Assembly (NCBI GenBank): GCA_977017575.1
Contig: CDRNVI010000067.1
Coordinates: 141,662 to 205,661 of the forward strand
Direction of reading: 5' to 3'
Length of the DNA: 64,000 nt
Source of the DNA: Paramoeba atlantica
Taxonomy: Eukaryota > Protista > Discosea
Part shown: one piece after another, positions 3,988 to 49,873 of the stretch
Position numbering within the stretch: position 1 is the stretch's first letter
Layout: each line of letters opens with the position of its first letter
Made by a program: the position numbers and the translations under genes
The notes under the pieces: generated by a model
Seen by the model: only the letters and a program-made list of their open reading frames with translations
The model's database searches: none
What the model was told of the DNA's origin: nothing

Positions 3988-6255
3988 ATGGACCAGGAGA
4001 ATGTAGGACAACCCAAAGGGGAGAATGGTGAATGCTCAACAAGGTTTACCTCCCCCGAAACGACGCTCACGTCCGCTGTGGTTGCGGCGGCGATTCGAAA
4101 TGTTTCCCATTCAACACATCTTTCCCGGCTGCTTCGTGTTCTCCCCCCGTCGCTTCGCTCGAAACCTCAAATCTTTCTCGCGCTCTCGGAGCGAAGTACG
4201 AACCCGGATGCTATACTCCGTGCGCTGCGGGAGTTAAGAGAAGCAGGCGAGAGCCCCCCGCCAGACTCGATTCCACGAATTTTGAATAAACTCCCGCCTA
4301 ACTTATGGAGAGAGGCCGTGGAGGTAGTAAGGACAGCTTTGAGAAGAAGCGAGGCAAATGCACCGTCCTCTTCTTCGATTCCTTCCACTCTTCCATCCAA
4401 TTGTTTTTTTCCCAACACTCCGCTTTCATTGGAATGTTTTGTAGTGTTACTGCGGCTAGCCGCTCGTGCAGGAGCGCTTTCTTTTGTAGAGAATCTCGGG
4501 AAGGATCTTTCTTTTGTCAACGGCACGGCTTCTTTATCCAGAAGTGAGCCAGAGGCTATACAGTTTCCCGAAGCATTCTTCTCTGATGCCACTCGAAGCT
4601 CCATTCGCACTTCCTTATGTGTGGCGAAGTTTACCCAAAAAGGATTAGCTCCGGAACGGAGTCCTACCCGACTGAACGTACGACGAATGGAGAAACACCG
4701 AGAGATGCGAGAAAAAGTCAATGCGGTGCTATCGCGAAACAAAACAACAGAAAGTAGCGCATCTCAAAGTACGGAAAATATGAATTCAAGAACAGACACC
4801 ACTTTTTCTTCTCTTCCGAAAAAAGAGGAGAATACGAATGAATTTACAGCGTCTGATGTAGAATCAGAATTTGAAACTGAACTCGCTCGAGCTCAAGAAA
4901 ACGCCTCGCAAACCGTGGAGCAGCGTTACGATGCGGAGCGTCGTGAAGCCCAACGTATCCACCCTGCAGTTTCGGAACTCCAACAAATGGATCGGGAACA
5001 CATCCCGCTGGACCCCTCTGGTCCGCATCAAATCATCCAGGCCCTGAGGGAGCAAGGGGACTGGCCGACGGGACTCTATCTCGTCGAGACCCGAGCGGAA
5101 TTTCGTAACTCGCGCCAAGCGATTCAAGGCGTAATCCAGTCCATGGCCCGGGAGCATCAGGCCACCGCATTGATCGATTTCACGGAAATTTTACAGCGTG
5201 AAGAGGCAGGCGGAGAAAAAGAGGCAATAAATGAGGAAGAAAACGCAGGAAGAGGAGGAAAACTTGAAAAGCAGGATAAAAGCAAAGGAAACGCCCCCCC
5301 TCCTCTCCGTCGTAGTCTTGCCCTTGTGTGCTCCATGTTGCATGCACATTTAATGTGTAGTAATCTTCACGCCGCCTACGATATCTATTTTGAGTATATC
5401 CGACCCTTACTGTGTGCTTCCAATCAAGTTCAACCCGAAATCCGGGGGTGCTCAGCAACAGAGGAGGAAGCCGTAATGAATAGCAACTCGCCTCAACAAA
5501 TCTTTCCCTCCAATTGGATGTGTTTCGGTCTCAGTCTCGCGGCCACCATTTTAATGAAGCAACACACCCAGGCGTTGGATATTGCCCATCACATTGCCCG
5601 TGTCGCTCTCCCTGCGGTCATCGAGGAGGCAAAAAAAGCAAACGAACAAATTAACACAGAAAAAGGAAAAAGGGAAGGGCCGGATACGGAGAGCAGTCCC
5701 AACAAAAACGAAAATCCTCCGATTTCTTCTTCCAAACAAAACGTTACGCCTTCAAAAACCTTACCCGAAGAAGAGAATTTAGATTCCATCGACGGGACAA
5801 CAATCGGAAACCAATACCTCCCAGGAGAAGCAGCGGAAGAAGAAGATTCTTCCTCCCTATCTTCACCTTCCCTATCTCCTGGATCCTATCCTAAAAAAGA
5901 CGTGACCACGAGTGCCTTACTCGAGCGCTGTGGTCTCCCCGATGTTTTGCTCTTCCCGGGCTCTGAGGAGAACGCTTTAAGGGACTCTTCTTCCCCTTCG
6001 AGGGCCTCTGCTCTCTCCCCCGAGCGGTTTCTGCATAACCTCTGCGCCACCTTCGCGCGTCACGTCCACCGGGACTGGATGAAGGCGCTGCGGGAGCTCG
6101 AGAGCGTGTTCCGGGAGGCGGGGCTGCGGATCCCGGACAGCGCCCGCGCCACGTTCCTGCAGATCAGCGCCAGCTTCTCCAACGAGTCCTACCATCAGAA
6201 GAATATCTTGGATCGGTTTCTGCAAGAGGAAACCGAGGGGAGAGAGAAAAGATGA
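3988..6255 (+). CDS. 755-aa protein, probably alpha-helical repeat (degenerate PPR/TPR-like) with low-complexity linkers
   Basis: Long intronless ORF. Helix-pair segments include QIIQALREQGDWPTGLYLV, CSMLHAHLMCSNLHAAYDIY and HNLCATFARH..WMKALRELESVFREAG. The family call is inference. Confidence 0.75.
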   Translation: MDQENVGQPKGENGECSTRFTSPETTLTSAVVAAAIRNVSHSTHLSRLLRVLPPSLRSKPQIFLALSERSTNPDAILRALRELREAGESPPPDSIPRILNKLPPNLWREAVEVVRTALRRSEANAPSSSSIPSTLPSNCFFPNTPLSLECFVVLLRLAARAGALSFVENLGKDLSFVNGTASLSRSEPEAIQFPEAFFSDATRSSIRTSLCVAKFTQKGLAPERSPTRLNVRRMEKHREMREKVNAVLSRNKTTESSASQSTENMNSRTDTTFSSLPKKEENTNEFTASDVESEFETELARAQENASQTVEQRYDAERREAQRIHPAVSELQQMDREHIPLDPSGPHQIIQALREQGDWPTGLYLVETRAEFRNSRQAIQGVIQSMAREHQATALIDFTEILQREEAGGEKEAINEEENAGRGGKLEKQDKSKGNAPPPLRRSLALVCSMLHAHLMCSNLHAAYDIYFEYIRPLLCASNQVQPEIRGCSATEEEAVMNSNSPQQIFPSNWMCFGLSLAATILMKQHTQALDIAHHIARVALPAVIEEAKKANEQINTEKGKREGPDTESSPNKNENPPISSSKQNVTPSKTLPEEENLDSIDGTTIGNQYLPGEAAEEEDSSSLSSPSLSPGSYPKKDVTTSALLERCGLPDVLLFPGSEENALRDSSSPSRASALSPERFLHNLCATFARHVHRDWMKALRELESVFREAGLRIPDSARATFLQISASFSNESYHQKNILDRFLQEETEGREKR

Positions 6256-6564: not shown

Positions 6565-7287
6565 ATGTTTGAGTTCTGTGCATTAGCCTGTGCATTACGT
6601 GCAGCTGAGGAACAATCTATAAGTCGTCCTTGTGCAGCGAAGGTGAGCTCTATTACCGTGCCGCAAGAGTACGATTTAATAAGACTTATTCAAAATATGC
6701 AGGAAAGACCCCCTAGCTGGAACACCGACACACCTGCATGCGAGTGGGAAGGCGTTGAATGCGACGAGAAGAATCAAGTTAAAGAATTCAGTTGGTGTTT
6801 TGAAAACCTAGGATTCTTAGTTTGGAAATATTTGCCACAGAGTTAAGTTTCTTTTCGCATGCAACATGGCCATCTTCGCGGTGAACTTCCCTTGGAAGTG
6901 TTTCCTCCGAACCTAACGCAAATATATTTGTATGCGAATCAGTTAACCGGTCATCTTGACTTGCTCCAGCTCCCACCCATACTGGAGGTCTTGGATGTCG
7001 AAAAAAATCATTTCCATGGCACCGTCGATTTCTCATCACTTCCGACAACTTTGGAGGAACTAAAGCTGTCGAGCAACAGCGAACTCGAAGGTGCGTTTGA
7101 TGTGGATATGCACAGCCCTGATTTGTATTACGACTTTCTGCAAACAAACATTACAGTCTCGGACGGATGTCGAATTCGAGAGCTCTACTTTGATGTGGAT
7201 GAAGATGACGTTGATGAGTATGAAGATGAGGACGTTGATGAGGATGAAGATGAAGAGGACATGCATGTACATGATGATTTGGATTAG
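6565..7287 (+). pseudogene. Duplicate of the TAA-interrupted LRR gene
   Basis: Identical to 1114..1836, including the TAA at 6844-6846. Confidence 0.85.
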
Positions 7288-7862
7288 TCCTGTACGTACT
7301 TGATGTGTGCAATTAGATTGATTGTTCAATTGTATTCGATTGATTGGCTGTGTAAATTGGAGGGGCGGGGGCCTTGTTTACTGTTAGATAAATGATTACT
7401 GTTAGATAAATGATACTGTTAGAGAAATGATTAGAAAAATACTAATACTTCTCCGAATTTTCCTGTTAAAAGTTGATATTTGAGGGGCTGCGGGTGGCGT
7501 CCCGAGAAACCGCGGTATACGATCGGCCCCCCGAGGCCTGGTCCGATAGTAATGTATACCTAAAAAATCTTTGATTTTAGTATTCACGTATTCATGTAGT
7601 ATAGTATTTAGTAGTATTTACGTATTCGCGTATAGTATTCACGGGGTTTTCAACATTTTTCCCGCCTCTATCACCAAAAACTTGGAACAAGTAATTTATG
7701 CGCTCTAAAGAATGCCAACCATCATCAAGGAATCACATGAAGCGTTTTTTGCGCTTTCATTCTTTTTGGCAACCTATGGAGACACGCGAATACAGCTGAA
7801 TGTAGCAGCTGAATGAACCATTTAAAAAAGCCTCTTGATGGTAGGTTTTTGAATTTCGTGTA

Positions 7863-9680: not shown

Positions 9681-10357
9681 GGGAGCGAAGGGGCAAGAAC
9701 TCATACATGTAGTTTGAAGCACATGGTACTCAGAGGGCGAGTTCGAGACCAGCTCATCGCATGCCGTATACCCCCCAGTAAGAGAATGAGTTTTGGGTCG
9801 AAATGGCAAAATCTTTTTTACTGGGGGGTATACTTTTTTGGACAGTTTCCTCTTTTCTCGCAACTTTTTCTGCCATTTTTTCTATTCTTCCTTCTGAAAA
9901 TGTGTTAAAACGCTTATTTGGGTTACCCCCGAGGCCCTCAACATGCAGACACCCACCCCCTACCCACTATACGCCTCCTGTGGGGATCCCGAGCCAAATC
10001 TCTCTTACTCGGGGTCAGCCCAAAAAGGGCCAAAACTCTCTTACTGGGGGGGTACTCTCTCTTACTGGGAGGTTATACGGTAATAGGCTGGGCTGAGAAC
10101 TGACTAGGCCCAGTACTCGGAGGATCGACCCGGACCTTCCCCCAAGGAACCAGCTCCCTTACCCGGCTTACACGTCTTGGGTGAGTCGTGTTGGCGTACA
10201 ATTCGTCGACGCATCGTGTTGGTAGCAACACGTTGGTGCCGCCTTGGACAAGCGGAAACTGGTAGAGGACGTCGTCCTCTGAACTTGCGGATCTGTCTGA
10301 AGGGTCTGGCTTGCCAGTGACCGTCCGCAGCAATCCGGAATGATTTGCACTTTTTTT
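9681..10357 (+). mobile_element. tRNA-derived SINE, older copy interrupted by a MITE
   Basis: Degenerate A box (GAGCGAAGGGGCAAG), B box GTTCGAGACC, a body homologous to the 15220 and 49420 copies, and a T7 tail. No TSD found. Confidence 0.75.
9764..10080. mobile_element. MITE (317 bp) nested in the SINE
   Basis: TIR CCGTATACCCCCCAGTAAGAGA / TCTCTTACTGGGAGGTTATACGG with internal CTTACTGGGG repeats. Flanks are TG and TA. Confidence 0.8.
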
Positions 10358-15119: not shown

Positions 15120-15670
15120 CCATTTTCGAACTTCGTCAGGATCTATTCGGGGAATGTCATGCTTTATACGCAATGATCAAAAGTTTCGAAGAGAAGTCAA
15201 CAAGGTACAGGCCAAATGCAAAAAAAAATCCAAATCATTCCGGATTGCTCCGAATGGTCACTGGCAAGCCAGACCCTTCACAGACAGATTTGGAAGTTCC
15301 GAGGCCAACGTCCTCTACCAGTTTCCGCTTGTCCAAGGCGGCACCAACGTGCTGTTGCCAACACGTTGCATCGACGAACTGTACGTCAACACGGCTTACC
15401 CAAGAGGTGTAAGCCGGGTAAGGGAGCTGGTTCCCTGAGGGGAGGGTCCGGGACGGTCCTCCGAGTGCTGGGCCTAGTCGGTTCTCAGCCCATTCTCTTA
15501 GAATGAGGCTGCCAGGAATAATGTGATGAGCGGGTTTGAACTCGCCGTCTGAGCACCACGTGCGTCAAACTTTGAATTCTTGCCACTCCGCCATCTCCGC
15601 CCCCCAGGCCAAAGTAATGCACTCCGGTTGGCGAAAGCAGCCCCTCAGCTTTAGAATGTACAGTTGTAGC
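15120..15670 (+). pseudogene. Possible IS5/PIF-like (DDE_Tnp_4) transposase relic interrupted by the SINE
   Basis: Removing the SINE restores QKFRREVNKVQAKVMHSGWRK, which resembles the FN..S.VR..VE motif of this family. Similarity is weak and judged by eye. Confidence 0.3.
15220..15604 (-). mobile_element. tRNA-derived SINE
   Basis: The minus strand starts GGGGCGGAGATGGCGGAGTGG (A box), has GAGTTCAAACCC (B box) and ends in T9. Flanked by CAGGCCAAA(GTAA)TGC at 15208.. and 15605.. Confidence 0.85.
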
Positions 15671-48719: not shown

Positions 48720-49873
48720 TTTGTGCGGCAACTTTGGGTAACGCCCCGACGGCAGCCCAATTGGGCCGCATGAGGCAGATCCAGAATGTGCACTCCACCA
48801 GGTGGATGAGTGTCCTACCGAACAGGACGGAGTACTACATGAGGGACCCGCAGTGGAAGACTGCGGCCCGTCTCCGGTACCTGGTCGCCCCTACCACGGA
48901 ACCTGAGCTCCAGTGCGTGTGCGGTGCGACCCTCAGCAATGAGGAGTTTTGCGTACACGCACTGGATTGCAAGAAGGTTAAGGGGAAAATACAGGCCTCC
49001 CGCCACAAGGAGGTCAAAGAAGCGTTCCGGAACCTCCTGGTCCACTATCATAGTGGACCCGGGACTATGGGTTCAACCCGGACCTCCACAAGCCGAGGTT
49101 CGACAACGGACGGGGGCCAGACATCTGTTTCCAGCTGGGACGGAAGATCGTCCTAGTTGACGTCACAGTTGTGAACCCACTGGCCCCGTCGTACGTGGAG
49201 AAGGAGGCCGCGGAGCCATCCTACACGCTGAGGATGGCCGAGGCCAACAAAAGGCGCTCTCATGAGGAGATGGCGCTTGTCAGGGGCATGGAATTTCACC
49301 CCCTGGCCTTCTCCACGTACGGGATCCCGGGCCCAGAAACCTTGAACTTCCTCAACAAGGTGGCCCGGGCCCACTTTTCGGACAAAAATGGGTGTATCGC
49401 CCATCTCTTGGTGGCTATCCAAAAAAAAATAATCCAAATCATTCCGGATTGCTCCGGATCACTGGCAAGCCAGACCCTTCATAGACAGATTTGGAAGTTC
49501 CGAGGCCGACGCCCTCTACCAGTTTCCGCTTGTCCAAGGCGGCAACAACATGCTGTTACCAACACGCTGCGTCGACGAATTGTACGTCAACACGGCCCAC
49601 CCAAGCGGTGCAAGCCGGGTAAGGGAGCTGGTTCCCTGAGGGGACGGTCCTCCGAGTACTGGGCCTAGTCGGTTCTCAGCCCAGCCTCTTAGAGTGAGGC
49701 CGCCGGTAATAATGCGATGAGCGGGTTTGAACTCGCCGTCTGAGCACCATGTGCTTCAAACTTTGAATTCTTGCCACTCCGCCACCTCCGCCCTGGTGGC
49801 TATCGGGGTGCCCATCCAGAGAAGGAACGCCAAGATCGTACAGGACTGGTACCGCCGCGGGGTGAGGGGGTAG
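48720..49873 (+). mobile_element. 3' fragment of a CRE/SLACS-clade non-LTR retrotransposon
   Basis: Zn knuckle CVCG..HALDC..RH, then restriction-like endonuclease motifs PD..DVTVVNPLAPSY..AE..K..F.PLAFSTYG and terminal IQRRNA. Interrupted by a 20-bp insertion and a SINE. Confidence 0.9.
49420..49793 (-). mobile_element. tRNA-derived SINE (374 bp) with an exact 11-bp TSD
   Basis: A box TGGCGGAGTGG (49784-49774), B box GTTCAAACC (49732-49724), T9G tail. TSD TGGTGGCTATC at 49409..49419 and 49794..49804. Confidence 0.92.

Follow-up and report, generated by a model that had tools for sequence, protein, structure and literature searches.

The window analysed here is a stretch of 64,000 nucleotides (positions 141,662 to 205,661 of contig CDRNVI010000067.1, here C67) from a 45.7-Mb assembly of 248 contigs filed as Paramoeba atlantica. 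Its long open frames all lie on one strand. The window also contains three copies of a short repeated element, which is probably a young, high-copy short interspersed element (SINE): a 374-nt non-coding retroposon composed of a tRNA-like head suited to RNA polymerase III (Pol III), a body, and a 3′ end that mimics those of resident long interspersed elements (LINEs). The core of this reading stems from a first-pass annotation of the sequence, which proposed a short, non-coding, dispersed and undescribed retroposon with a tRNA-type head, flanked by target-site duplications (TSDs) and moved by a LINE. TSDs, empty insertion sites, a cloverleaf and a LINE-type tail now support it. All comparisons were made on the premise that the DNA is kinetoplastid. 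Below, C-numbers denote contigs of the assembly and L-numbers the genomic loci examined around element copies and LINEs. X1, X2 and X4 are public sequencing runs under the same organism label; the kind of run is not on record, and their contigs are no measure of expression.

The copies in the window and their parts are as follows.

49420..49793, minus strand: full-length SINE copy 3 (374 nt), with 93% identity to the family consensus and an internal deletion of 10 nt
49794..49804, minus strand: upstream TSD of copy 3, exact 11 bp, GATAGCCACCA in the sense of the element
49713..49791, minus strand: tRNA-like head of copy 3, covering the cloverleaf of element nt 3-81
49774-49784, minus strand: A box, within this head
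49744-49754, minus strand: variable-arm-like hairpin, within this head
49724-49734, minus strand: B box, within this head
49714-49720, minus strand: 3′ acceptor strand, within this head
49443..49458, minus strand: 3′ stem-loop of copy 3, a 6-bp stem (TCCGGA/TCCGGA) with a GCAA tetraloop, shaped as the 3′ hairpin of resident LINEs
49420..49442, minus strand: tail of copy 3, GATTTGGATTA followed by T9 and G
49409..49419, minus strand: downstream TSD of copy 3, exact 11 bp, GATAGCCACCA
15217..15604, minus strand: full-length SINE copy 2, with 95.8% identity to the consensus
15605..15613, minus strand: upstream TSD of copy 2, 9 bp, TTTGGCCTG in the sense of the element
15583-15593 and 15533-15543, minus strand: A box and B box of copy 2
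15239-15254, minus strand: 3′ stem-loop of copy 2, whose tail reads T9-GCA
15208..15216, minus strand: downstream TSD of copy 2, 9 bp, TTTGGCCTG
9681..10357, plus strand: SINE copy 1, older, with a decayed A box and a B-box-like site at 9739-9750
9764..10080, plus strand: secondary insertion in copy 1, 317 bp, resembling a miniature inverted-repeat transposable element, with terminal inverted repeats of ~22 nt (CCGTATACCCCCCAGTAAGAGA); not part of the SINE
10324-10339, plus strand: 3′ stem-loop of copy 1, with one mismatch; the body of the copy resumes at 10086 and its tail reads T7-GG

The three copies sit where they had first been placed, the start of copy 2 alone moving from 15220 to 15217. 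The A box TGGCGGAGTGG and the B box GAGTTCAAACC, 41 nt apart, and the acceptor-like pairing GCGGAGG/TCATCGC are present as annotated, as are the 3′ junctions of the form Tn-G(G/C)AT (T9-GGAT, T9-GCAT and T7-GGAT). The identity of copies 2 and 3, put at roughly 90%, measures 93% over aligned bases and 89% with gaps counted. The exact 11-bp TSD belongs to copy 3 and the one given as at least 9 bp to copy 2, at 9 bp; none was found around copy 1. Neither copy 2 nor copy 3 interrupts a long open frame. A 100% identical copy of copy 3 lies on contig C185 (L001, C185:121661-125034), and its flanks match those of copy 3 as well, for ~40 nt per side. The junction between copy 1 and its 317-bp insertion recurs identically in L030 and L020, which indicates that the composite was duplicated or moved.

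A recently active family that moves by retroposition

The family unit measures 374 nt before the tail, and its longest ATG-initiated frame has 52 codons. Pattern searches of the whole assembly returned 268 matches to a 30-nt head motif (at most three mismatches) and 351 matches to a 24-nt tail motif (at most two mismatches), while the reversed control patterns returned none. Twenty sites with a tail only were considered as possible LINE ends; they proved to be truncated or head-mutated SINEs. The 44 full-length copies examined are 93-99.7% identical to their own consensus, most of them above 97%. The element is thus short, non-coding and present in high copy number across many contigs, a dispersed family of about 300 copies that has been active very recently. 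Because the motif counts include copies in tandem arrays, segmental duplications and near-identical contig pairs, independent insertions are somewhat fewer.

SINE copies occur inside tandem blocks at C12:136386-162355 (period 6,485 bp), at C21:765702-781433 (period ~1,995 bp) and on C88 (period ~3.4 kb), so that part of the copy number reflects array amplification and not retroposition. Four pairs of loci are near-identical (L011/L025, L023/L024, L027/L029 and L020/L030) and are either haplotigs or recent segmental duplications.

Mobility by retroposition is directly evidenced by TSDs of variable sequence and by empty sites. A count of TSD-flanked copies, a check suggested earlier, found direct repeats of at least 8 bp (8-15 bp, mostly 10-11) at the element ends in 28 of the 56 copies with both flanks, a set that includes a few near-identical contig pairs counted twice and amounts to ~50 distinct loci. 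When flanks of different copies were paired as a control for chance, repeats of this length appeared in a mean of 3.5 and a maximum of 7 copies. The first empty site is a LINE copy in L044, which lacks the insert carried by a 98.7%-identical paralogue in L039; the 15-bp target is found once in L044 and twice in L039. At the second, L038 lacks an insert that is present in L003, with 12 bp duplicated. The third comes from contigs of X1 and X2, two samples, which join position 1493 of L007 to position 1892. The skipped 398 nt correspond to the element plus one repeat, and 9 nt fit either side of the join. The flanks of these contigs differ from the assembly by ~2%, and their lack of the insert implies that the L007 insertion is younger than the split of those lineages or alleles. 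With ~300 recently spread copies, and one insertion already seen to differ between samples, the family supplies ready-to-use markers for strain and population work.

Other structural features of the copies are outcomes of the process proposed below. The 5′ end is truncated in 15 of the 56 copies, at scattered breakpoints, and in many copies a few extra bases separate the repeat from the first base of the element. Two loci (L021:1304-1886 and L038:7857-8067) hold head-to-head structures, in which a 3′ half beginning at element nt 175 is attached to an inverted head or an inverted whole copy. Such an inverted-head shape is the product of twin priming in mammalian L1, which the two structures resemble. 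Their common junction suggests one ancestral event that was copied later.

Contigs of X2 and X4 differ from the assembly over a longer part of L007, where a 998-bp stretch (L007:1170-2169) is replaced by 28-30 other bases.

The tRNA-like head and the 5′ end of the RNA

The head spans ~80 nt, and young copies have preserved both its A box and its B box. ARAGORN, run at a 90% threshold, folds element nt 3-81 into a cloverleaf with six of the seven acceptor pairs and with the B box in the T arm. At this setting 322.6 kb of genomic DNA yield 46 hits, all but two of them on SINE copies and ~40 on heads, and the cloverleaf is found in ~40/40 heads of the examined DNA. The two remaining hits are one LINE sequence seen twice, equivalent to one independent background hit in ~305 kb. 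Since nearly all hits fall on SINE copies, the head signal is specific, though weak. The description of the head as putatively tRNA-derived rests on the promoter boxes and this sub-threshold cloverleaf.

The box spacing and a 4-bp hairpin at the position of the variable arm fit a long-arm (class II) tRNA. In pattern searches, two nuclear tRNA-Leu genes resemble the head in the A box, the 5′ strand of the acceptor, the variable-arm hairpin and the B box. For nuclear tRNA-Leu(TAG), ~16 of the first 19 nt of the element match, and GTTCAAACCC is common to both. tRNA-Leu may be the parent of the head, as a lead and not an identification. Two other origins were rejected. The locus is not a genuine tRNA gene, given empty results from ARAGORN at default settings and from gathering-threshold and permissive Rfam scans (the former over the whole window). 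A descent from 7SL RNA of the Alu/B1 type, which some short motifs recall, is discounted since no signal recognition particle family appears in the permissive Rfam scans; their only hits on the element or head are chance microRNA matches of ~11 bits.

Two further sets of tRNA-like sequences were encountered in the assembly. A multi-copy tRNA-like 3′ half, GGGTTCGAACCCGCTACTCGTAG, occupies ~10 genomic sites (C2:726146, C7:89165 and C54:769229 among them), usually followed by T4-5. It may represent a family of tRNA genes, or else the head of a further Pol III element. Many short contigs (C108-C133, C221) carry identical AT-rich, organelle-type tRNA-Tyr and tRNA-Ser-like genes and look as if a plastid or other organelle genome, possibly that of a prey organism, had been assembled several times.

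The position of the RNA 5′ end is suggested by chimeras with 5S ribosomal RNA (rRNA). At three loci a full 5S rRNA (75-99 bits with Rfam, model positions 1-120) lies a few bases upstream of the element start.

L015:1882-2000, minus strand: 5S rRNA fused head-to-tail to the SINE 5′ end
L006:1884-2002, minus strand: 5S rRNA fused head-to-tail to the SINE 5′ end
L029:1889-2005, minus strand: 5S rRNA fused head-to-tail to the SINE 5′ end

Genome-wide there are five 5S-SINE junctions, of three types. The whole L015 chimera is bracketed by the 9-bp repeat AAGGCGACC, and its 5S part repeats the initial 18 nt of 5S rRNA for 2.6 units. In the simplest reading, the reverse transcriptase would have run to the 5′ terminus of the SINE RNA and switched from there to 5S rRNA. 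Judged by these junctions, the RNA begins where the tRNA-like unit begins, which is what transcription from an internal Pol III promoter would give. Full-length copies differ by no more than a few bases in where they begin, and no spliced-leader piece is present ahead of the element. Chimeric retrocopies of the human U6-L1 type are similar in that a small Pol III RNA is joined to the 5′ end within one insertion. They differ in that the acceptor RNA here is a SINE instead of a LINE or mRNA, and in that the 5S part here can carry the 18-nt reiteration.

The 3′ module and the resident LINEs

The body, ~260 nt, strongly folded and with no relative detected, ends in TCCGGA-GCAA-TCCGGA-AT, followed by GATTTGGA. 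The RNA of the element folds much better than shuffled sequences (z = -3.8). Its 3′ module consists of a 6-bp stem, a GCAA tetraloop, two bases and (T)TTGGA repeats with T-run expansions. In 32 of ~58 tails a T-run of at least five follows directly after the first unit, with further GGATTTGGA units in 19 and alone in 13; the others are pure (T1-4GGA)n (14 tails) or mostly T-run variants (12 tails). The T-runs are 5-18 nt long, with a median of 8. The earlier description of the 3′ end as T7-9 followed by G in place of poly(A) holds for the window copies, whereas the idea of a plain oligo-T tail gives way to a stem-loop with (T)TTGGA repeats.

Plant poly(T) SINEs also combine a tRNA-type head with many copies that end in a T-run and lack poly(A). 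Here, however, the T-run lies within or before GGAT-type repeats and a stem-loop precedes the tail, so that the likeness is only superficial. Membership in that type was rejected, as only 13 of the ~58 tails are a T-run alone.

The tail architecture instead resembles that of a group of LINEs in the same genome.

LINE-A (L044, L039): encodes reverse transcriptase and RNase H; 3′ end ACCGAT-GCAA-ATCGGT-CTT-(ATAGG)n; 38 genomic 3′ ends
LINE-C (L003): C-terminal part of a related open reading frame; 3′ end ACCGAC-TTTAC-GTCGGT-CT-TTTGGATTGGATTGGA; 44 genomic 3′ ends
LINE-B (L038): related family in which an AP endonuclease domain is seen

The hairpins of the SINE and LINE-A have an identical loop and the same stem length and position. 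Three stem positions are kept and three are changed with compensation, and the variant LINE-A loops, GAAA or GTAA, are also GNRA tetraloops. The tail string of LINE-C, TTTGGATTGGATTGGA, is carried exactly by five SINE copies. The 3′ end that the SINE has in common with its partner LINEs comprises the hairpin and a GGAT-type repeat; as no sequence beyond these is shared, the pairing is architectural. Two further features extend to the insertions themselves. LINE-A in L044 is flanked by a 10-11-bp duplication, and it starts with 9.2 tandem copies of its own first 18 nt. The SINE head is likewise reiterated at an 18-nt period, with 2-3 units, in at least six loci (L013, L018, L019, L022, L048 and L049). 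LINE-A copies with uninterrupted frames of up to ~1,535 aa exist. Given the common hairpin, repeat tail, 10-11-bp duplication and 18-nt reiteration, this reverse transcriptase-RNase H LINE group is taken as the probable driver of the SINE. The first-pass annotation had invoked mobilisation by an unidentified LINE. Mobilisation of LINE type stands, and the driver is no longer wholly anonymous: it probably belongs to a LINE group that has four signatures in common with the SINE.

A mechanism can be proposed from these features. The head would act as an internal Pol III promoter, with transcription starting at the first base of the element, and the predicted transcript would be ~380 nt long, beginning with GGGCGGAGG and ending in a T-run. 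The 3′ module would imitate the 3′ end of the LINE RNA, either ACCGAU-GCAA-AUCGGU with (AUAGG)n or ACCGAC-UUUAC-GUCGGU with (UUGGA)n, and through this imitation the LINE protein may bind the SINE RNA in trans. The RNA would then be copied into the nicked target by target-primed reverse transcription, and slippage on the repeat would produce tails of variable length. The outcomes seen are 8-15-bp TSDs, variable 5′ truncation, extra 5′ bases, 18-nt reiteration, inverted copies and 5S chimeras.

By analogy, the design itself is known from the "stringent" SINE/LINE pairs of fishes and reptiles. Okada and colleagues reportedly described such LINE-type 3′ ends in the eel pair UnaSINE1/UnaL2 and in salmonid and tortoise pairs. 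The likeness extends to the A and B boxes in a tRNA-like head, to an unrelated body, to a 3′ stem-loop with short tandem repeats that copies the signal of the partner LINE, to a variable repeat number, which fits slippage, and to TSDs. In contrast to these pairs, the element here has only a 16-nt hairpin and the repeat in common with LINEs and no longer block of the 3′ untranslated region (UTR). Its stem sequence differs from that of every LINE copy examined, its tail has T-run expansions, and its host is a kinetoplastid.

Competing origins and wider bearing

Several points weigh against a Pol III-transcribed SINE with a resident LINE partner. The polymerase, its transcription of the SINE and the ends of the RNA are all read from DNA sequence. 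The one run presumed to be RNA yielded no contig on the element locus, which does not indicate silence. ARAGORN at default settings detects no tRNA anywhere in the window; the Rfam model for tRNA, applied permissively to the element and to the head alone, gives no match (below ~11 bits). The absence of TTTT from the body is uninformative, as 62% of shuffles lack it too (P = 0.62). In about a quarter of the tails the first unit is not directly followed by a T-run of at least five, and many tails continue with GGATTTGGA beyond T6, where Pol III is expected to stop; this suggests that the repeats were made during reverse transcription, unless termination is leaky. On the LINE side, the earlier suggestion of comparing the SINE 3′ end with those of resident LINEs was followed. 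It returned the hairpin and repeat described above and nothing further: local alignment of the consensus with the 3′ regions of LINE-A and LINE-C is no better than with shuffles. No LINE with exactly the SINE stem sequence or with a (TTTGGA)n tail occurs in the 330 kb examined. A search with the LINE protein returned unnamed environmental relatives and distant animal LINEs, with no ingi or L1Tc names.

Some of these points would be accommodated by a non-autonomous retroposon that owes nothing to Pol III. Its RNA would be trimmed from RNA polymerase II (Pol II) read-through of polycistronic units, and the head would be a relic with no promoter role. The near-ubiquitous transcription of kinetoplastid genomes would provide such RNA, the failure of the Rfam tRNA model to recognise the head would be expected, and the sequence past T6 in many copies, which Pol III should not read through to, would pose no difficulty. 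However, trimmed read-through does not predict full-length 5′ ends that are uniform to a few bases, 5S chimeras that join exactly at the element 5′ end, or an element free of any spliced-leader piece. Nor does a relic head account for A and B boxes that young copies preserve and that have decayed in the older copy 1. This origin is unlikely, even though it is the alternative that survives best.

The good fold of the RNA relative to shuffles is compatible with another origin, in which a functional, structured small RNA whose 5′ domain resembles a tRNA, comparable to those of the BC1/4.5S type, would have given rise to the copies as retropseudogenes, so that they would not be a purely selfish SINE. 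Such an origin is quite improbable in view of ~300 dispersed, near-identical copies that carry a LINE-type 3′ handle, among which no conserved master locus is evident. No Rfam family matches, no copies were found in JGI metagenome contigs with the exact head and tail motifs, and LINE mimicry already accounts for the hairpin and the repeats of the 3′ end. A LINE that has lost its interior, as have RIME, NARTc and SIDER, its head and tail being the two ends of an autonomous element, would belong to the sole kind of short retroposon described in trypanosomatids (PMC12278014) and would explain the LINE-like tail architecture, but is scarcely credible for an element whose 5′ end is unlike that of LINE-A (an 18-nt array, then the open reading frame), which has no similarity to LINE 3′ UTRs past the hairpin and no poly(A), and whose head bears Pol III boxes and a cloverleaf.

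The preferred reading, a tRNA-headed SINE mobilised in trans, sets the family apart from the short retroposons of trypanosomatids. RIME, NARTc and SIDER derive from ingi/L1Tc as LINE deletion derivatives with a shared 5′ signature and poly(A) (PMC12278014, PMC2323293). They too are short, non-autonomous, TSD-flanked non-LTR (long terminal repeat) retroposons of kinetoplastids. The element here differs by its tRNA-like head, the lack of poly(A) and a body that is not LINE-derived; the comparison leaves aside the 77-79-nt ingi signature. It was not assigned to the ingi-derived group, because poly(A) is absent and the LINE ends compared (LINE-A and LINE-C) show no similarity to it. In trypanosomatids, the mobile elements described comprise four clades of retrotransposons together with short elements derived from LINEs (PMC12278014). 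The literature searched yielded no description of a SINE of tRNA type from any kinetoplastid, and a paper on free-living prokinetoplastids does not discuss such repeats.

The family would show stem-loop recognition by a LINE enzyme operating in a deep-branching lineage, and the SINE has scattered hundreds of putative Pol III promoter boxes through the genome, where Pol III genes reportedly rely on tRNA-type boxes next to them. A 5′ reiteration of 18 nt that SINE, LINE and 5S chimeras have in common is an unusual clue to how the reverse transcriptase completes its copy. A bolder proposal, offered tentatively and on balance doubtful, is that this is the first tRNA-type Pol III SINE of Kinetoplastea and that its enzyme re-copies almost exactly the first 18 nt of any template. 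Re-copying at the template 5′ end would have produced 2-3 units on the SINE, 2.6 on 5S rRNA and 9 on LINE-A. If true, a measured reiteration of the template end during target-primed reverse transcription would build the 17-18-bp tandem arrays of this genome, which have 9 to ~250 units and include the following.

L044:2148-2312: tandem array that forms the 5′ end of LINE-A
L048:1-4503: tandem array
L032:3256-4966: tandem array
L041:1619-1956 and 4507-5234: tandem arrays
L038:1997-2388: tandem array directly upstream of the open frame of LINE-B

The LINE-A copy at L044 itself lies inside a satellite with units of ~60-70 bp (beginning CACTGCAGTCACTGC), which occupies L044:1466-2147 and 6957-7796 and recurs in L023, L024, L043 and L050.

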